Source: Takakia lepidozioides (Eukaryota > Plantae > Bryophyta). Taken from it: a stretch of DNA of 64,000 bases. This document shows, in pieces, positions 39,600 to 50,175 of this stretch. The DNA is taken from the NCBI GenBank assembly GCA_030704615.1, contig CM060733.1, positions 17,980,001 through 18,044,000 on the forward strand. The letters are read 5' to 3'. The stretch's first letter is position 1. Each line of letters starts with the position of its first letter. The translations under genes were made by a program, and so were the position numbers. The notes under the pieces were generated by a model that was not told the DNA's origin, made no database searches, and was given only the letters and a program-made list of their open reading frames with translations.

Positions 39600-40000
39600 T
39601 TAATTTGGAGTGGAAATCCTACGAAGTAGTCGTGGAGCCTGTCCTTGATAAAGAATATTGTGATATCATGAGATTGGTATTCATGATCCCTAGAGACCAG
39701 AAGTTGGTATTTGGCATAACATGAAATATTTGAAGAGCTAAGAGCCAGGCAGAGGGGATGGAGTCTTTAACGATCTGGTAACCATGATTCAATCTCACCC
39801 TTCCTACTTTGAGAGCCAAGTGTTGGGGCTCCTGAAAGCCCCGGTTATTCCAGATGTCATTAATTTGGCTGACTCCCTTCCTGTCCCAGAAAGACCAACG
39901 ATGCGCCTGGGATCTTTGAGTATGAGAAGGGGGGGTTGTCATTTAGGAAGATGTGCTGCCTCAATATTTCCTCATAGCTCTGCGGTTCCGATTTTTTGAG
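39600..40000 (-). mobile_element. Probable L1-type LINE fragment (post-RT region)
   Basis: WSFWDRKGVSQINDIWN..IVKDSIPSAW resembles the L1 ORF2 linker. The match is weak. Confidence 0.4.
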
Positions 40001-40030
40001 GAAACGGCATAGGCTCTGTGGAAAAAACAT

Positions 40031-41972
40031 GTATTTGGACTTAGATGACATTGGACCTTTGGGCCAATGGCAGAGGCTACCCTAGAGGTTGCACTTGGGC
40101 CTGGACATAGGAGATACACTTGCATACATAGGAGATTGCACTTGTGCTTAGATGACACTTGACACTTGGGCCTTGACATAGGAGACGCACTTGAATGCAT
40201 AGGAGATTGCACTTGGGCATACACATGACCCTGGACACTTGGGCCAACGGCAGTGGCTACCCTAGGGCCTAGAGGTTGCACTTGGGCCTCGACATAAGAG
40301 ACACACTTGGATACATAGGAAATTGCACTGGGGCTTAGATGACAGTGGACAATTGGGGCTCTACATGGGAGATGCCCTTGGATACATGAATAAAAGGTTG
40401 CGCTTGGATACATAGGAAATTACACTTGGTCTTAGAATCCAATTCTTCACATATGGGCCAAACGGCATAGGCTACACTAGAGGTCGCACTTGGGCCTCGA
40501 CATAGGAGACGCAATGGGATACATAGAATCTCACACTTGGGCTTAGATGACACTGGACACTTGGGCCAACGGCACAAGCTAGAGGTCGCGTTTGGGCCTC
40601 GCCATAGGAGATGCATTAGGATACATAGGGGATTGCACTTGGACTTAGATGCCACTTGACACTTGGGCCAACGGCACATGCTACCCTAATCAATATATAA
40701 AGCAAGACGTTTGTTTTGTTTTGTCACGTGGAGATGTCCCAAACCGGAAGGCCCAACGCATTGCTTGGTACCATTGGGAAGCCCTCGACGAGGATGGGTG
40801 CATAAGCTTGGTCTCATGATTTTTGGACCTGCGGTGTGGGAGATGGGGAAATCCAAGTACTTTTGGTCACTGGAAATTCCCGAAAAATAGCAAATTGGGC
40901 ATTCATGGGACAACTAGGGTAGCTTGTGCCGTTGGCCCAAGTGTCTAGTGTCATCTAAGTCCCAAGTGCAATCCGCTATGTATCCAAGTGCGTCTCATAT
41001 GTCGAGGCCCATGTGTGAAGAATTGAAATCTAAGTCCAAGTGCAATCCCCTGTGTATCCAAGTGCGTCTCCTATGACGAGGCCCATGTGTGAAGAATTGA
41101 AATCTAGGCCCAAGTGCAATCTCCTATGTATCCAAGTGTTTCTCCTACGTAGAGGCCCAAGTACGACCTCTAGTGTCCAATGTTATCTAGAGAACCAAGC
41201 CCGTGCACCCCTCCTCGTCGTCATCTAAGTCCAAGTGCATGAATATATTAAGAAGTCCAATGTCATCTATGTCATCTATGTCATCTAAGTCTAATCATTT
41301 TTTTTCCATAGAGCCTAGGACCGGATTTGAACCGGAGACCTTTCCCTTGATATCTCTCATGTGGAGGCTCCAACCATTGTCCCATGAATGCCCACTTTGC
41401 TATTTTTCATGAATTTCCAGCGACCAAAAGTACTTAAAATTCCTATGTCAATGCCCATGTGTGAAGAATTGAAATCTAAGCCCAAGTGCAATTTCTTATG
41501 TATCCAAGTAGGTCTCCTATGTCAAGGCCCAAATGCGATCTCTAGTGTAGCCTTTGCCGTTAGCCCATGTGTAAAGAATTGAAATCTAAGCCCAAGTGAA
41601 ATCTTCTATTCATGTATCCAAGTGCAATCCCATATCTAATCATTGTCCAACAAGTACTTGAAATGCGTTTTAGCCATATCTAATGAATTTTTTTCCACAT
41701 TGCCTACGACCAGTTGCGAACCGGAGACCTTTCCTTTGATATCTCTCCCATCGAGGCTCGTCCCATGAATGCCCACTTTGCCATTTTTGCTATCTTTTGT
41801 GAATTTCCAGCGACCAAAAGTACTTGGAATTCCGTATCTCCCACACCACAGGTCGAACGATCATGAGACCACCTCTCCTCGTCGAGGGCTTTCCAACGGT
41901 ACAAGCATCAGTGTTGGCCCCGTGGTTTGGGACATCTTGACGCTACAAAACAAAACAAAACAAACAAACGTC
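40031..41972. repeat. Composite repeat family arranged as an imperfect inverted (fold-back) structure; continues at 45392-45572
   Basis: Subrepeats CACTTGGGCC..GACATAGGAG..CTTAGATGACAC in 40031-40688 recur reverse-complemented in 40915-41630. Segment 40690-40912 is inverted relative to 41761-41972. Confidence 0.85.
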
Positions 41973-44900
41973 AGAGAGAGAGAGAGAGAAGACTCCGGCC
42001 AAAGCCGGCGTAACTAAGAGCCACTTCGCCTTGCGGCTACTGCACCCTTTCGGGGGTGGGTTCTATAAAAAGAAAAGGTGTCATGTGAGACACCAAGTGA
42101 CCGTAGAAAGTAGAGGAGTCTATGGTACCCCTGGGTACCCAGGGGTACCCTAGGAGACCTAGGATGCGTTTGAAGTGCCGGATTCTAGTTGGCGTTTGTT
42201 GGTGATAATAGCTGTGAGTGAACGGAGTGTCGTGAGATGAATTGCTTTGAAGCATTTGTGGATGTGAAGAGTGGGAAATTTGAAGTTATCATATGTCATT
42301 GATACTGGCATTATGAATGCCGCCTCGAGTACCGACGGTGATGACGGTTATTGAGCCAGTTTTCCAGCCATACCGTCAGATTGCAAAGATAAGCGGGGCA
42401 TATTTTGACGTTTTTCTAAAATCCAGTCATTGGGATAACAATCGTGGCAAAACGTGAAATTCAATGAAATGAATGGTAAATTGTGGGGATGGTGAGGTAG
42501 GGGGTGGGGTGTTAATGTGTAGGCCTTGTACAAGGAGTATGTCCGGGCAAAGCCTAGCAGGGCATAAACAAGGTGATCGGGTACATATGCATGGTAGCAG
42601 CCAGGATGACACAGTATGGTCAGGTAACCGACTTTGGTAGGTGCCAGCGTTTATGAGCAAGAACCATTTGGTTTCAGCACGATTTAGAAAGAGCTTATGG
42701 ACATGCCAGACTGTCTGGTTGTGTCGCGTGATATGAAGGCCATGTATGATCGGGTGCATACATTGGCTGAGGAGATGTGACCAGGTGTCACGAGCTTGGT
42801 GAGTGGTTGAACATAATGGGCAGTATGGGGATGGGAATATATGCGGCCAGAAGATGTGTTTGCGTTGGTAACCCATGTATTGGGTGTATCTGAATTTGTG
42901 TTTGTCAAATTTGTGCGTCAGTGGTAGCTTTAGTTAGCCAGAAATGATTTGAGAGTTTATGGTGCAATACATTTGATTGAGTCCATTTTTGGATGTGTAC
43001 TTTGGTGTGGCTGATGGAGGCTGCGTCTTGTTTATTTGCTTCTCTGGTCAAAGTGATCAAAAGGTTTCGGACTGGTCTGGGTACAGGGGGTCCAGGACTG
43101 GGTGTATAAACCAGAAGGGGTAGGTATGGGCGATGTGGATAAGGTCGGTTGTGGGTACGATTGTGGGTTGAGAGACGCCAAGTTGAGCGAGTAGGTCTGC
43201 TTCCTCATTACCATGAATGCCAGTGTGCGAGCAAACTTTGAGTAAATGGATTGGATGGTTTTTGGAAATGGCCATTTGGACAATGGCGGAATGAGGTTGC
43301 GGTCGGGGTGATGATGATGCGGGAGATGTGGTTTCAAATAAAAAATAGAGAGGTGAGGCTATCAGTGAAGATATAGTATGGGGGGGGGGGGGGTCAAGTA
43401 GAGAGAGAACGTTGTGGATGGCCATGAGCTCAGCCCTTAGAATGGTGGCAGGGCCAGGGAGTCGGAGGGCAACACCACGACCGCTGTTGGCGTGATAAAT
43501 TCCATATCCTGCATTAGGTTTGGTGAGGGATCCATCAGTGTTACAGTGTGAGTTTGCCGGGGGATACTTGAGGGTGGTGTTTTATTGATATAGTGAGGGG
43601 ATTGGGGGAAGGGGTATTGTTGGTATTACCTGGGGGGGGGCGGCGGCTATGCAATGCCCCATGCTTTGTTTGTTTTGATCTGGGGAAGTATGGTGGTTGT
43701 GTGGGTGTGGAGGGGTGTAGCTGGGTAATGGATGGTGGCCTTCATTTTATGAGTTATGATTAGCAACTTGTTCTAGCTGGTGGAAAAAAAATGTCGGTAT
43801 GTTTGTATGAAGGGGGTTTTGGACATGTAGAATCAAGTTAGGGTAGGTTCTTTCATTTTGAGATACTTGGGAAGATGGGAGGTATGAACATACTTAAGCT
43901 GATTTGGCTCAATTGTGGCGAGTAGATTGTTCCCTTCGGGGAGTCGTATGAGAGGGTGGGGGGTGCTAGGTGTGTTTTGCTGTGTAAAGATGATGACTGT
44001 GAAGGCAAGAGGAGAGGAGTGTGATGGAATTTTTCCCATTGGAGAGCTTTATAAGCGAGGGGGCCATAGGGGGGGTGGGCAAAGCCCCTACCCTCCCAGG
44101 TATGCTGGGTAGTATTGTCGGTGGCTCCAAAGAGACAATCCCTATGGTGCGGGCTGGAAAATGTGTGCAAGTCCATAGGACATGTCAGTGGATTGGAGTA
44201 ATATGAGTGAGTAAGCTGGAATATATTAATAAGTAAGGCGAGAATATCTTGGGGTATGGCATGGTATGCGCATGCCATTTCCAGTCGGATGAGGGATCAT
44301 GGCTTCTTGGGGGGGGGGGGGGGGGGGTATTTGAGGTAGTGGTCTACGAGCCAATATAATTCGGTAGTGAAGTCTTGTTTTGGGGGTTGTAAAGATTGTG
44401 GATATGAGTTTGCAACAGAATACTTCTCCCACAACCATGTTAATATTAGGAATGAGTCCAATGAAGCGGCGTATTGAGCGTATATATTGGAAAGGCGGGG
44501 GCCCATGTGAATTAATGGTTGGTCATGCTTGACATCTTTGTCGGGGTTACACTCAGTTATGCAGATGTGCACGTTAGGGGCAGAGATCGGCTGGTGAATG
44601 TATCCACTATCTGTAGGTTGGGCGGGGGTGGTGTGTTGTTGGTGAATGTGTGTAAAGTAGTCCGTGTTAGTATGTTTATGGAAGGAGGTGAGAAGGGCAA
44701 GATTGTGTTCGGGGTCACAATCATCATATGGGCCAAATAGGTCATCTTCTATCTGCCATGTGTTGTCTTGTGGAGAGTAACCAACCCATTTACACTGGTA
44801 GTATGTATCAATACAGGTGGGCACCGAAGGCATCGATTGACGTTTGGGTTTTGACTCATAATATGGCTTCAATGATGTATGCATTATTATTGTCATCATT

Positions 44901-45391
44901 GTGTGGATAAGGTGGGGGGGACGTTGTGGTGAGTGGTTGGGAGTGGGTGGGGGAGCCTTGCATATTAGACAAGGGGTTGAATGGCATATCCATGTTGTGG
45001 TCAGGTTCGGTATGTTGTGTGTTAGGTAGATGAGAGGGGGGGTTGGTTCTGTGATAGTGGGGGTATTGGCGGCATATGCCGTTTTAAGTGTTGGTAGATG
45101 GAGGTAATAGGGGTAGATCGGTACTTGGGGAGCAAATCTTGAACCATATGGGGATAGTAGAGATATGGGATATCACATTGGAGGGTGCAGGCTGCTAAGG
45201 GATGATAGAAGAGGGGTCGGAGATGGTGTAGGTATCGACTGGTTTTGGTCGTAGATCGGGAGAATTTAAGAGTGAATTCGCTTGGTTTTAAAAGTCGATG
45301 GCCGGAGGCGGTGGTAAGTTGGGTGAGGGGTGGTAATATGATGTTCTTTGAAATAGGGGAGGATGGGGATCTTTTGTTTTGGATGAGAAAC
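41973..45391 (-). mobile_element. 5'-truncated Dualen/RandI-like non-LTR retrotransposon (chromodomain, MTase-like, RNase H, CCHC, RLE)
   Basis: TSD ACAAACGTC at 41964-41972 and 45392-45400, and a (TC)n tail. RNase H motifs TDGS (~43535), RAELMAI and SHTGIHGNEEADLLA; CPLC..HLLSQC; RHN; PDIL..IEF. Many frameshifts, and the RT domain is absent. Confidence 0.85.
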
Positions 45392-46715
45392 ACAAACGTC
45401 TTAATTCATATATTGATGGTGACATGAGAGATACAAAAGGAAAGGTCTCCGCTTCAAATATGGTCGTAGGCTCTCTAAAAAAAATGATTAGATATGGCTT
45501 GCTTCGTATATCGATGCACTTGGACTTAGATGACACTCGACATTTGGGCCAAAGGCATGTCAGGCTACCCTAATAATTGTTATGCTTAGGTTCTTCCAAA
45601 TATTGGTGGCTCATTAGTCATTCCACCCAACTTGAGGTTACTAAATAACACTAAACAAATAAAAACGTTTTGCCCCTCTCCCCCACTTTTTTTCCCCCAA
45701 TAATTATTACTAAAATTCATCATGGCTACAATCCCAAATTTATTTAAAACAAATTCCCCTGTAATTCTCTTCCATGTCATATAAATTCGGTGTAGAGGCA
45801 TATCGCGTCATAATGGAATACAGCCAAGTGCGTTGGAGATGTAATTTCGAGCAGAAAATTTAGCCTTCAATACGGAGAGCATGACATAATAATAATAAAA
45901 GTTGGCATAAAACCTCGTCGGTTTGTCGTTATATCAACAGTCTTTACAGCGCATGTAATACGCAAGGGGACTACAGACCTCACCCGTGGATCAGTAGTAA
46001 CTCGCACGCCACTTATTTACAGTACATCCCTCAAGTCATGTCGTGTGGATCAGCACAACACCGGATCAGCACAACACCAAGCAACCCTTCCGCCCCAAGT
46101 AAACCACTGTCTTCCAAAATCCTTCCATCTCCTTGTCTGCAGTCTGCACGTAGACCTGGGCCCACTCCTCCCGCACCTTGAAATCACCCACCCTACTCGA
46201 CCCTCGATCCTCCTGCACCCTCTGGTCCTTGCCTGAGCTCCCACTTTGGGCTATACCTTGCCAAAATCACCTCCGTTCTAGAACTCCCTAGCATTCCTGG
46301 ATTCCATGTGGGCCCGCATGCAATAGCCACTTTGAAGGGGCATGCAATAGCCATGTGGGCCCAATGCAAATAGCCACCCTAGTTGAGCTGAGTCAGCTTG
46401 CTAGATGTTGCATGCAATAGCCATGTGCGCCCCACATGCAATAGCCACTTTGAAGGGGCATGCAATGGCCACGTGGGCCCAATGCACGCTGCCACTTCTA
46501 TTCAGACAGCCGCTTAAGCGTCGGCTTGCCTCTAGCTGATTTGGTTTTTTGGGCGTTTGGGGTACATATAGGGGTTTAAAAAAAATAAAAATCCACTAGG
46601 CGGACGAAAAAAAAGTTGTTCTATGTCACAATTTGTACGCTATTCCTTGGATAAAGTAAGTGATACATTTCTAAGTGTTATAGTTTGACATCTTGATCTT
46701 TCTATTCTTTCGGCA

Positions 46716-46775: not shown

Positions 46776-48816
46776 AATGTACAGCCCAATACCATTGGGA
46801 GGGGGGAGGAAATGACAGATGAGATCAGAGTCTGAAGCGCATACAGAGAGCTCTAGAACAAGCCAAGTGGCAATCTATAGATGGAGTTAGTAAAGATTGT
46901 TATACGTATGGTCTTTTTCTGCAACAGATATGCAGTCACGATTCTTTGCACCCGTTTTGTTACCCTCAAGGCAATGCTCGATGCATGTTGGAATCGAAAT
47001 CGTTTTCGATCCAGTGTTTAGTAGAAGGTACTTGCTCATATGCATAGCATGCAGTAGTCATCTGGGAGACTAATGGAAAGATGAATGATGTGTGATAGAT
47101 GGATTTGAGAGAGCAGGTAGAGAAATTATGCAAGACAATACAAGCTGTAGAGCAAATTCGATAGGTGGCTATGAAATGCACTTCCTAGAACAACATTATA
47201 GCATTGTGAACATTACAAGTCATTGAAATATGCTGTCAAGTATTGTCCTTCCCTTTGCCACCATTGTCGGATGTCTAGAGCTGGTGTGCTAGTATTTCTG
47301 CAGGTTGGGATATTTCAGCTTTTACTATATGACTCTGGACAACGATGTTGGTTGGGACGAAAAAATCTCTATTGACATATGACCCCTCATGAATTAAATT
47401 GTTTGACTAGATCAGAAAGAAGATTCAACAATAATTGCTCCTAGAAAAGGAGGTTTATGTGTTGAAGGTGACGATTCATCTTTTGTTCGGCAACTACCAT
47501 TTCAATATGGGGTTAGTATGGGGTGCTAGGGCTTGTGACACTAATCCGCGATCCCTCTGTAGGATGTGCACGCCTCTGGATATTGGGCACCACCTTCATG
47601 TGTTCTTTCGCTATCACCTTGTTCATTCACGATTAATCGTGAATATTGTATTTGTCAGCTGCAAAGTCTAGTGGCTTCTCAATGTTTGTTGCCAGAGTTT
47701 CAGGTCATTTGTGTACAGAACTATGGCCTTGCGCTTGCCCATAGTCACCTTGTAATTGCCCCGATAAACTCTGCCCAGACATATATATAGTGCTCATATC
47801 CGAGTTACCCATGGTTTTGGGGCTTTAGGAGGCGTAGGAAGAGAAAGATGATTTAAAGATTTTTCCGTGTGATGAACAGCTGAGACAGAAACATCTTCTA
47901 AGGGGTCCTTGAATAGCACAAGACATAGATGTCATAAATTGTTCTAGATCTTTAGGACCATAACATGTCAGGATCCCATCCTACGTTTTTATGTACTTAC
48001 TTTTGTAAGAAGTGGAAATGTGCCAAAGGAACTGCAGACCTACAAATCCACTGGAGGCCGTTTTTGTAGGAGATCTCTACTGTTTGATATCCATGATTTA
48101 AGGGTTTGGGTACTAGTAAGGATCAGAATTTGAAATAGTAATTTCGCAGAAAGTGTTGAGCTACTACAAAGGGATGCGCTTGAAATGGCTTCAAAGATTC
48201 TCTAACTTTGAATTCAAGACGGGTTCAAGACCAAGAGGAGTTCATATGCACACCATGTCCTTCATTGCAAGATTGTCTTAAGATAAAAAATATATAACAG
48301 AATTTCTTAAAAGTACATGAGCATCTACAGCATTCAAGTGGCCGGCACCAAACCTCCCCTTGAAGCTTCAGATACAGATTTCAAACAAATCATTTTCAGC
48401 AGTGTAAGAGCTGCATTACAAATATCTTTCAGAGAAAGAAGACCATGCTACAGTCTTCAGAACAACAGATCACTTCAGCTTTCAGCTCCTCCGCATGTCA
48501 GGGATGGGCCCTATAACTAACTGTATATGTGCGGGGTTGGCGGTGTTCAAATCTTTATTTGATGGTATTAAATAACAATGAGAGATCGGATGGCTGTAGG
48601 ATAAAGCGCCAGGCGGGGTTTGAGAGTGTGGGTGTGCTGCATTTTGATGTTTCGTGCATATAGCCTGTTCGTAGATCACGGATCAGAGATTAGCGTAGAT
48701 TACATGGCAGTACGTAGATGAATTCAATGTAACGTATGATCTTTCCTGAAGATCGATAGGATCCCGGCCGTGGTATCACCTCAGAGGTAGCGGATACATT
48801 TGCACAAGATTAGAGC

Positions 48817-50175
48817 TCATGCTTTGACGAATTCCACGACGGAGAGATCACCCAGAGAGACGGCAATGTCCAGGCGTGAAAAGTCTGCTGCCATTGCCAA
48901 ATGCCGAAGTTCCTGCTCAGTGCGCTCCTGGGCGCCCAGTGATTGGGTGACCATCATGAGGAGGTTTTTGCGGAAGATCAGTCGAGCGGCTGCCCCATGA
49001 TCAACATCCACAGGCACCACTGATTCAACTGCTATAACCTTTCCATTGGGTGGGAGTGCCCGGTAGCAGTTCTTCAAGATCTTGATGCAATCGTCATCGC
49101 TCCAGTCATGCAATATCGACTGTTTAAATGATTCACCAGGACCCCAGTGTTAAGGGCAAGAGAATTTTCACAGCATAACCGTTAACTCATTCTTGAGTAA
49201 AGACGAGGGAAAGCAAATTGAATATCAAGTGGCACAGGGTCAGCAGGGGACCTTCATGAAGATTGCATCACCCGATGGTACACTCTCAAACATGTCGCCA
49301 CCTTTATGCTCCACACCTGGCATGCATGGGATATAAAAACTCTGATTAATACAGCACAAACCAGGGGACTTGCAAGAAAAAGAAATCGACGAAAGTGTTC
49401 AGAGCGTACCAGGATAAGAAGGGGCGGCTGCAACTACATGAGGCTGATCAAAGTTTACACCCTGAATGTGGGGGTACTTCTTAGTGATGAGGCCGAGGGA
49501 GTAGCCCCAGCCTCCCCCTACATCTATCAAATGCTTCACGTCACCGAAGCCGTGGTAAAGACTCAGGAAAAGCTGCATGGAGACCTGCGAATGGCTGGTC
49601 ATCCCTTCGTTGAATATTGCGTCAAAACGTGGATCTACAGCGGCATACTCAAACATACTCTTCCCATGTGCTTTCTTGAAAGGCTCACTGGTGTCATCCA
49701 GAACTGCGGTGTGGAGTTGCTGCCACGTTTCCATCAAAATCTGGTCCTGGCTCATCAAAAGTATGGGTCCATATTTCGGGAACCCCTCCTCATCCCTGAC
49801 AAAATAGTTGCTCACTGGCAGCAACCCGTAACGACGCACGGTCTTGCTACCATCTGACTCTTTCTCCACTGTTTCGCTGAAGAAATCCTGGCTCGCTAGC
49901 ACACGGAGAATTCGATCCAAGTAGACAGCATTGAGTTGCTTTCCTGGCATGACTTGGAGGGCAAGCTCTTCAGCTGTCAGACCTGCACCAGGTCCAGCTT
50001 TGGCTATAGTATCGGGAACGTTCAATAGAATGGCGGCTTTCAAAGCTGCAGGTACTGTGTTCATGGTGAAGAAGTCCATTGCATGTAACCATGGTTTGTA
50101 GTCTAGATCCCGCTGCCGCTGCTGCTGGAATGTGCCAGACAGCAGATCACCTTCAATGCTACCGAATGGTGCCAT
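48817..50175 (-). CDS. SAM-dependent O-methyltransferase, COMT (caffeic acid OMT-like) family, 377 aa predicted
   Basis: Exons 50175-49410, 49316-49252 and 49119-48817, GT-AG and in frame. Dimerisation motifs [16 protein letters not shown], then [34 protein letters not shown] and ERT. Confidence 0.95.

Follow-up and report, generated by a model that had tools for sequence, protein, structure and literature searches.

What is a sequence resembling the catalytic motif of an N6-adenine methyltransferase doing within a long interspersed nuclear element (LINE), that is, within a retrotransposon lacking long terminal repeats (LTRs)? The question is raised by a 64,000-nucleotide stretch of the genome of the bryophyte Takakia lepidozioides (GenBank assembly GCA_030704615.1, contig CM060733.1, positions 17,980,001 to 18,044,000), a stretch which in its entirety is described here as 'the window'. 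At window positions 41973-45391, on the minus strand, there is a 3,419-bp, 5'-truncated non-LTR element. An earlier reading of the letters alone (here, the 'sequence-only reading') pointed within this element to the string HPPY and to a resemblance with PCIF1, also known as CAPAM, which is the enzyme that methylates the adenosine adjacent to the mRNA cap (m6Am).

The explanation favored here is that a Dualen-type LINE of high copy number left this 5'-truncated and now dead insertion. The full-length second open reading frame (ORF2) of this LINE would encode an apurinic/apyrimidinic-type endonuclease (APE), a reverse transcriptase (RT), a chromodomain (in the window's lineage), a PCIF1-derived domain, RNase H, a CCHC knuckle, and an R2-type restriction-like endonuclease (RLE). 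The flagged block would then be the core of the PCIF1-derived domain, i.e., the Rossmann fold of PCIF1 residues 417-668, minus the WW and helical domains. With the catalytic Asn of NPPF replaced by His (in a sister lineage, by Ile or Cys) and with the aromatic residue lost, this domain presumably is no longer an N6-adenine methyltransferase, and may instead have been retained by selection as a binding module.

Homology to PCIF1

Minus-strand positions 44293-43856 of the window translate to a piece of 146 residues, which contains the strings quoted by the sequence-only reading. Searched with HMMER against 1.84 billion representative proteins, this piece finds 82 relatives at E<=1e-3 and 17 at E<=1e-10, with the best at 1.9e-19. 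Ten clusters of relatives (designated below as P0001, etc.) were looked up, all of which are metagenome or read-assembly gene calls, none informatively named.

The resemblance to PCIF1 emerges only by way of these relatives or of a profile built from them. The window copy alone matches Pfam PF12237 with E 0.049 and 13.6 bits, which is under that family's gathering score of 31.1 bits. Six relatives, by contrast with that score, are above it (P0015 at 44.5 bits, P0072 at 42.7, P0079 at 41.0, P0026 at 39.6, P0069 at 35.5, and P0044 at 31.2), and 50 of 81 match PF12237 at E<=0.01, the best at 1.2e-12. The Pfam name of this family, PCIF1_WW, is a misnomer, as what is modeled is the CAPAM methyltransferase rather than a WW domain (PMC7641849); no WW match is seen in any Pfam scan, whether of the window's relatives or of P0102. 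Against the whole of the PDB, a profile of 81 domain pieces finds PCIF1 and nothing else (6IRX at E 5e-4, 6IRV at 0.12). The window ORF alone, searched against the same database, has no match, and P0069 alone has chance matches only.

As the sequence-only reading had proposed, AlphaFold and Foldseek were applied, here to the relative P0001, and the outcome is a Rossmann methyltransferase fold with PCIF1 as its top matches. The model, of P0001 residues 55-380 and made from the family alignment, has a mean pLDDT (predicted local distance difference test) of 77.6, a pTM (predicted template modeling score) of 0.73, and a core above 90. Its six best Foldseek matches are all PCIF1, with E from 1.6e-10 to 1.2e-8, the next being at about 0.02. 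By VIA-align, model residues 40-296 superimpose on human PCIF1 417-668 with a Z of 16.6 and a root mean square deviation of 4.5 A over 228 residues; the runner-up fold, KsgA, has a Z of 7.4. The match is confined to the methyltransferase core, with the PCIF1 WW and helical domains lacking counterparts. The block, as judged from profiles and from a predicted structure, is a PCIF1/CAPAM-type methyltransferase-fold domain by real homology.

A different origin may be considered, which is that the block is a methyltransferase of Dam type, as found in DIRS elements and some LTR elements, and not a PCIF1 derivative. Methyltransferase domains are known in DIRS elements, and clusters of phage-type Dam (PF05869) make up the third and fifth rows of an ESM Atlas fold search. 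In that same search, however, PCIF1 clusters come first with template modeling (TM) scores of 0.61 and 0.60, versus 0.39 for phage-type Dam. The Pfam scan of 81 relatives likewise finds no methyltransferase family other than PF12237, with Dam matched by 0 of 81. Dam-type domains of transposable elements also keep an Asn-Pro-Pro-aromatic motif, per the searched text of a recent preprint (bioRxiv 10.64898/2026.05.21.726589), which the LINE family does not, and the element, rather than a tyrosine recombinase, possesses an R2-type endonuclease. A Dam-type origin is therefore regarded as very improbable.

The block's resemblance to PCIF1 might instead be due to chance, given a proline-rich translation of C-rich DNA. 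The sense strand of the window copy indeed is 34% C and 13% G, with Pro and His codons thus common. This candidate, to which a vanishingly small probability would be given, was ruled out by the match to relatives (E 1.9e-19), by PCIF1 being the sole PDB sequence match, and by the fold Z of 16.6.

G-poverty of the sense strand, which is extreme, is a property in its own right. As a result, His, Thr, Pro, Gln, and Asn are frequent in the proteins, while Gly, Glu, Val, and Ala are scarce. The same poverty is found over positions 1-10000 of L003, a 30-kb metagenome contig bearing a relative, where the GC skew is -0.3 to -0.65 and the strand is A-rich. The G-poor composition is common to all 82 relatives of the window's lineage and is absent in P0072, P0079, P0102, and P0103.

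Motif IV and catalysis

When P0026 is aligned by HMMER with PCIF1 of zebrafish and of human, its A-H-P-H-T stands opposite A-N-P-P-F of PCIF1, and the HPPY of the window therefore falls exactly at motif IV, i.e., at PCIF1 N553-F556. The parallel in spacing to PCIF1/CAPAM which the sequence-only reading had proposed is seen in this alignment (to 6IRX and 6IRV). The residues found at the four positions among relatives are as follows:

Motif position 1 (N553): His in 57 of 77 relatives; Asn or Asp never
Motif position 2 (P554): Pro in 53 of 74
Motif position 3 (P555): Pro in 24, Thr in 16, and His in 11, of 71
Motif position 4 (F556): Asn in 20, Asp in 15, Thr in 11, and Tyr in 6, of 64

The classical motif is (D/N/S)PP(Y/F/W/H), which does not include His in first position, and we know of no natural amino-methyltransferase having His at position 1 of motif IV. 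None of 64 tetrads fits [DN]PP[YFW], and the broader [DNSH]PP[YFW], or HPPY, is seen in 4 of 64. Closest relatives instead possess HPPN (P0001) and HPPD (P0002), two further loci FPTD and HPSD, and the sister lineage IPPF and CPPF. By chance [DNSH]PP[YFW] arises rarely: among approximately 128,000 six-frame codons of the window it is matched 11 times, with one of these matches within the element. That HPPY represents a conserved motif IV is not supported among relatives, and the refuting outcome which the sequence-only reading had itself named, a motif not conserved among copies, is the one observed: Position 1 is His in 74% and never Asn or Asp, position 4 is mostly Asn, Asp, or Thr, and few relatives have HPPY at all. 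Codons for Asn, Asp, His, and Tyr differ from one another by single first bases, and the Tyr of the window's HPPY, going by the relatives' alignment, therefore seems to be one of the less common states at a position that varies, rather than a conserved catalytic aromatic.

In human PCIF1, the change N553A abolishes activity (PMC9178792). The domain, judging from its motif, probably is not catalytic in the canonical way, and the family-wide loss of this key residue implies that it most likely binds rather than methylates. Of the two functions that the sequence-only reading had suggested, a catalytically dead binder is thus favored over methylation by the family of its own RNA or cDNA.

The columns best conserved between the LINE family and PCIF1, which speak against too simple a verdict of 'dead', are SPL[TN]C, FGS, and the Asp preceding FGS. 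Within the family, conservation is concentrated in SPL[TN]C, D..FGS, W..G.G.AHP, and a Trp found after strand 5. This last residue, four residues past the strand, is kept in 35 of 47 relatives and is lost in the window copy. PCIF1 has a cap-stacking Trp, W588 (PMC13290413), and a cap-stacking Trp has served as a screening criterion (bioRxiv 10.64898/2026.10.22.757692). The family's Trp may be the counterpart of W588.

It is conceivable, nevertheless, that the domain is an active methyltransferase employing a non-canonical loop (HPP[ND], or xPPF in the sister lineage), with the element's RNA (a cap-adjacent or internal A), its cDNA, or an RNA/DNA hybrid as substrate. The model shows, at high confidence, that the fold is retained in full, the residues under strongest conservation fall on the loops expected to bind cofactor, and the His and first Pro of the motif are strongly conserved (57/77 and 53/74). 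Human PCIF1, moreover, is active in vitro toward single-stranded DNA and toward RNA/DNA hybrids (PMC9178792), which are substrates that arise in retrotransposition. Weighed against this are that no relative has Asn or Asp at the position where alteration to Ala kills PCIF1, that the window's lineage does not conserve the adenine-stacking aromatic, and that the sister lineage, in keeping PPF, has Ile or Cys in place of Asn. Also absent is the PCIF1 helical domain, from which the site for RNA and cap is partly built (PMC9916840, PMC13290413). An active enzyme is for these reasons considered rather unlikely.

Probable retention by selection

The sister lineage supplies two intact ORFs, P0102 (3,706 amino acids) and P0103 (3,382 amino acids), in both of which the order is a Cys-protease-like motif, APE, RT, the PCIF1-like domain, RNase H, CCHC, and nuclease. 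Identity between the two is 68% for RT, 56% for RNase H, and 49% for CCHC plus RLE, followed by 46% for the PCIF1-like block, 41% for the Cys-protease-like region, and 31% for APE. The domain thus is conserved between these intact ORFs much like the endonuclease is, and it therefore is probably functional, as a non-catalytic binding module. It occupies the same position in two deeply diverged Dualen lineages, which, together with its endonuclease-like conservation, suggests that it probably is part of the element's replication.

The alternative is that the domain is a functionless relic, one simply carried along within the polyprotein. Loss of the catalytic motif would be in line with this, as too would be that sampled copies are mostly decayed. 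A relic, however, is not expected at the same place in two such lineages, including within two intact ORFs of more than 3,300 amino acids, nor is it expected to show an identity that matches that of the endonuclease and exceeds that of APE, nor many columns that are more than 80% conserved across 80 relatives. Based on these sequence comparisons, a neutral relic would not be kept as the PCIF1-like block has been in both lineages, and this alternative is viewed as quite improbable.

What the domain may bind

The reading toward which we lean, as being somewhat probable, is that of a non-catalytic module which holds the element's RNA or instead an RNA/DNA hybrid. The ligand, by conjecture, would be RNA of the element itself (perhaps the 5' end with its cap) or an RNA/DNA hybrid beside RNase H, and binding would act during target-primed reverse transcription.

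Several points weigh against this binding module. The first is just that conjecture, i.e., cap, RNA, or hybrid as ligand. A second is that SPLxC, the Asp, and FGS follow strands 1 to 3 of the model, which by fold topology would be the place where class I enzymes bind S-adenosylmethionine (SAM), and this placement of conserved residues, if right, would fit a cofactor-using enzyme as well as it would a binder. The His-Pro-Pro loop, in addition, could in principle still position a substrate. Lastly, the relatives mostly are gene calls on decayed copies, which makes the column counts noisy.

A more specific proposal, which is offered tentatively and which on balance seems doubtful, is that the PCIF1-derived domain is an old, standard, and undescribed Dualen component that acts specifically on the 5' end of the element's RNA. 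It would do so either by binding the 7-methylguanosine (m7G) cap via the conserved Trp or, in some lineages, by SAM-dependent methylation of RNA or of the RNA/DNA hybrid employing the His-Pro-Pro loop. Were this so, then either would be the first cap-directed or adenine-methylating activity encoded by a LINE.

The more general implications are several. If the domain binds a capped 5' end or an RNA/DNA hybrid, then this bears on how a LINE protein recognizes, and completes the copying of, its own template. If the domain is still catalytic, then it would tie LINEs to adenine methylation. For annotation, the domain accounts for an otherwise unannotated stretch between the RT and RNase H of Dualen elements, and PCIF1_WW matches in plant genomes can be transposon debris instead of a host PCIF1 gene.

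The element and its relatives

The window copy and its surroundings consist of the following, as ordered from the element's 5' side to its 3' side:

45392-45400: target-site duplication on the element's 5' side, ACAAACGTC as read on the plus strand, the identical 9-mer being found at both ends
44900-45391, minus strand: remnant of the ORF2 linker found downstream of RT, i.e., the truncated start of the copy, with APE and RT missing (both are upstream of the chromodomain in the full-length relative, L003)
44633-44806, minus strand: chromodomain, partly decayed (Pfam PF00385, Chromo, E 3.2e-5 and 24.2 bits, slightly under cutoff; tblastn of P0001 residues 2-57 to 44800-44633)
43806-44518, minus strand: PCIF1/CAPAM-like methyltransferase-fold domain (tblastn of P0001 residues 94-350), with a stop at 44296-44294
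44077-44066, minus strand: HPPY (CAC CCC CCC TAT), at the position of the PCIF1 catalytic NPPF, N553-F556 (HMMER alignment of P0026 to 6IRX and 6IRV)
43539-43177, minus strand: RNase H (Pfam PF00075, E 2.8e-4, and tblastn), in a reading frame different from that of the PCIF1-like block
42718-42822, minus strand: CCHC zinc knuckle (42822-42760) and RHN motif (42726-42718), by direct reading, residues which are invariant in the relatives' alignment
42132-42549, minus strand: restriction-like endonuclease core and ORF end (PD 42546-42541, IEF 42465-42457; frame change near 42470; tblastn of P0002 and P0003)
41973-42131, minus strand: 3' untranslated region, ending in a (TC)n run at 41973-41990
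41964-41972: target-site duplication on the element's 3' side, the identical 9-mer

The location of HPPY on the minus strand between chromodomain and RNase H, as first described from the letters, agrees with translation, Pfam, and tblastn. Further downstream, an ORF of the window copy displays C-x2-C ... H ... C, then RHN, then CPDILL, and then IEF, a series which we take to be the CCHC plus PD-(D/E)-K pattern of R2-type restriction-like endonucleases.

The same domain order can be pieced together from relatives. P0001 has a chromodomain (Pfam, 36.6 bits) and then the PCIF1-like domain, while P0002, P0003, and P0026 have the PCIF1-like domain and then RNase H, with CCHC and nuclease next in P0002 and P0003. 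Pfam scores for RNase H are 54 bits in P0002 and P0003 and 40 bits in P0102. The L003 relative is near full length, though frameshifted. Pfam finds in it APE (E 9.8e-6), RT (E 9.4e-12), and the PCIF1-like domain (31.2 bits), and direct reading of translations adds an RRM-like ORF1, a chromodomain-like stretch, RNase H, CCHC, and a PD nuclease. Word-indexed protein searches (with P0002 whole, with the P0102 domain region, and with one profile) contributed only P0103 as new. A metagenome scan with P0002 residues 1-240 gave no confirmed locus, and one with alignment A4 gave two short loci.

In the C-terminal region of relatives, CCHC, RHN, RLxPD, and the E and K residues are invariant. An AlphaFold model of the P0002 C-terminus (pLDDT 70.8) has as its top 7 Foldseek matches exclusively R2 retrotransposon proteins, with E from 3.2e-7 to 4.3e-4; the link to R2 is seen only by this fold search, with the P0002 C-terminus having no match by sequence in the PDB. 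APE and RLE are found together within one element in L003, P0102, and P0103, and RNase H is downstream of RT in the relatives. A single element that combines APE with RLE and also possesses RNase H is what sets the Dualen/RandI group apart (PMC4640811, PMC5029228, PMC9977147). Full-length relatives possessing APE, an R2-type RLE, RT, and RNase H, the family therefore is a Dualen-type non-LTR retrotransposon, this class being assigned by domain content.

Two side observations concern the domains of these elements. In the window's lineage there is a chromodomain inside of LINE ORF2, between RT and the PCIF1-like block, and a chromodomain was not detected in P0102 or P0103 (Pfam scan of P0102). 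Chromodomains are integration-targeting modules of LTR chromoviruses, and to our knowledge they have not been known as such in LINEs. Upstream of APE, the string Q-x-F-C-Q-x-H-x-F-N-M-L is conserved, at about 1280-1300 of P0102 (L006) and about 1010-1030 of P0103. By its residues it looks like the active site of a cysteine protease or deubiquitinase, which would fit the C48 peptidase of cryptophyte Dualen elements.

Insertion and decay of the window copy

That the block lies within a LINE bounded by target-site duplications, as had been stated from the letters, is supported by duplications identical at 9 of 9 positions and by a (TC)n run at which the sense strand of the element terminates. All of the hallmarks of a target-primed reverse transcription type of insertion are present, that is, a 9-bp duplication, 5' truncation, a (TC)n simple-repeat 3' end, and no LTRs; the element is present once in the window and lacks terminal repeats. 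When the flanks are joined, with one duplication copy removed, they align across the junction with a paralogous repeat unit at 40689-40894, and the LINE therefore was inserted into a local satellite-like repeat. The array which served as target extends over 40000-41750 and 45420-45575 of the window, its units being about 80-87% alike and found in both orientations, and spurious ORFs in this array have recurring peptide strings in common.

Neither RT nor APE gives a signal upstream of the chromodomain in the window copy, in any frame (Pfam and ORF translations), and it is because of truncation of its 5' end that the copy retains only RLE of the two endonucleases. A reading frame running from about 45400 to 43853 is interrupted by a single in-frame stop (44296-44294), and further downstream the frame changes at least twice. 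RNase H, the CCHC knuckle, and most of the nuclease are read in a second frame, and the ORF end in a third. The description of this copy as degenerate thus was correct, and indeed, without APE and RT and with its in-frame stop and frame changes, the copy is dead and on its own functionless.

The family in the host genome and neighboring sequences

Public contigs of the same organism were compared with the window copy at 80% likeness. Thousands match (4,791 in run X1), mostly being 80-95% alike, which marks the family as abundant and old. Transitions make up most of the differences from other copies (on the plus strand, A>G 185, G>A 132, C>T 72, and T>C 69). The changes specific to the window copy are likewise mostly transitions, with numbers that track the C content of each strand. 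Such a pattern would be expected if cytosines of a methylated plant repeat were deaminated.

In DNA runs of the organism, summed contig depth over the last approximately 90-110 nucleotides of the element (window 41973-42086) exceeds that over the element's remainder by a factor of 25-50. In RNA-labelled runs, contigs are found almost only over the 3' terminal 90 or so nucleotides, from which they run on into unrelated sequence. Together this suggests either a non-autonomous family that shares the tail, i.e., one resembling short interspersed elements, or instead massive 5' truncation.

Elsewhere in the window, at 47721-47810 on the plus strand, a stretch of 25-27 residues can be matched to the nuclease region of P0003, at 59% identity, and to that of P0002; another related element may have left a very small piece here. 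Two minus-strand ORFs (49399-50175 and 48817-49113), as viewed by eye from their translations, seem to resemble exons of a plant-type O-methyltransferase gene.

Comparison with known systems

With published Dualen/RandI elements the family shares APE and RLE in a single ORF, RNase H, and a CCHC knuckle, and the N-terminal Cys-protease-like motif of P0102 and P0103 recalls the C48 peptidase that has been listed for cryptophyte Dualen. Published domain lists, however, consist of APE, RT, RNase H, CCHC, RLE, peptidase, and, in cryptophytes, SET, with neither a PCIF1-like domain nor a chromodomain (PMC4640811, PMC5029228, PMC9977147; these lists do not extend to the original 2005 description or to Repbase). 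A full-text literature search, with the original 2005 Dualen description and Repbase outside of its scope, similarly turned up no account of a LINE with a PCIF1-type domain.

Compared with PCIF1/CAPAM itself (PDB 6IRV-6IS0; PF12237), the fold is the same, as too is the series SPLxC ... D..FGS ... G.x.A-x-P-P, with equal spacing. The LINE domain differs in being without WW and helical domains, in not conserving E558 of the m7G site, in having His (Ile or Cys in the sister lineage) for the Asn of NPPF along with an aromatic that is not conserved, and in being embedded in a polyprotein between RT and RNase H.

Capture of domains that modify chromatin or nucleic acids is known for retrotransposons, examples being DNA methyltransferases (DNMTs), Dam-type methyltransferases, chromodomains, and methyl-CpG-binding domains. 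DIRS1 elements and DAM-carrying LTR elements resemble the present family in having a domain of adenine-methyltransferase fold within a retrotransposon polyprotein. These, though, are tyrosine-recombinase or LTR elements rather than LINEs, and the order is RT, RNase H, and then methyltransferase, versus RT, methyltransferase, and then RNase H in Dualen. Iyer, Zhang and Aravind in 2016 placed the DIRS1-type methyltransferase-like domains in the PCIF1 clade, and predicted them to be inactive, possibly binding template transcripts or mimicking PCIF1 (PMC4738411). The idea of a dead PCIF1-clade domain within a retrotransposon polyprotein thus already exists. A 2026 preprint, in that portion of its text which was searched, instead describes the DIRS and LTR domains as of the Dam family, with a conserved Asn-Pro-Pro-aromatic pocket, and makes no mention there of PCIF1 (bioRxiv 10.64898/2026.05.21.726589).

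Among LINEs, SymbioLINE-DNMT of dinoflagellates (PMC5890265), to go by the part of that source drawn upon here, similarly possesses a captured nucleic-acid methyltransferase domain. That domain, however, is a C5-cytosine DNMT rather than a PCIF1-type fold, and it is found in another LINE lineage and another host.

By analogy, the best precedent for a retained pseudo-enzyme would be the catalytic-dead Pcif1 of Drosophila, which is a natural PCIF1 homologue. The insect Pcif1, its catalytic motif mutated, is inactive yet is still functional, having been retained with non-catalytic roles (PMC10158991). It differs in being a host gene, one with a WW domain, which works through the C-terminal domain of RNA polymerase II, whereas the LINE domain has no WW.

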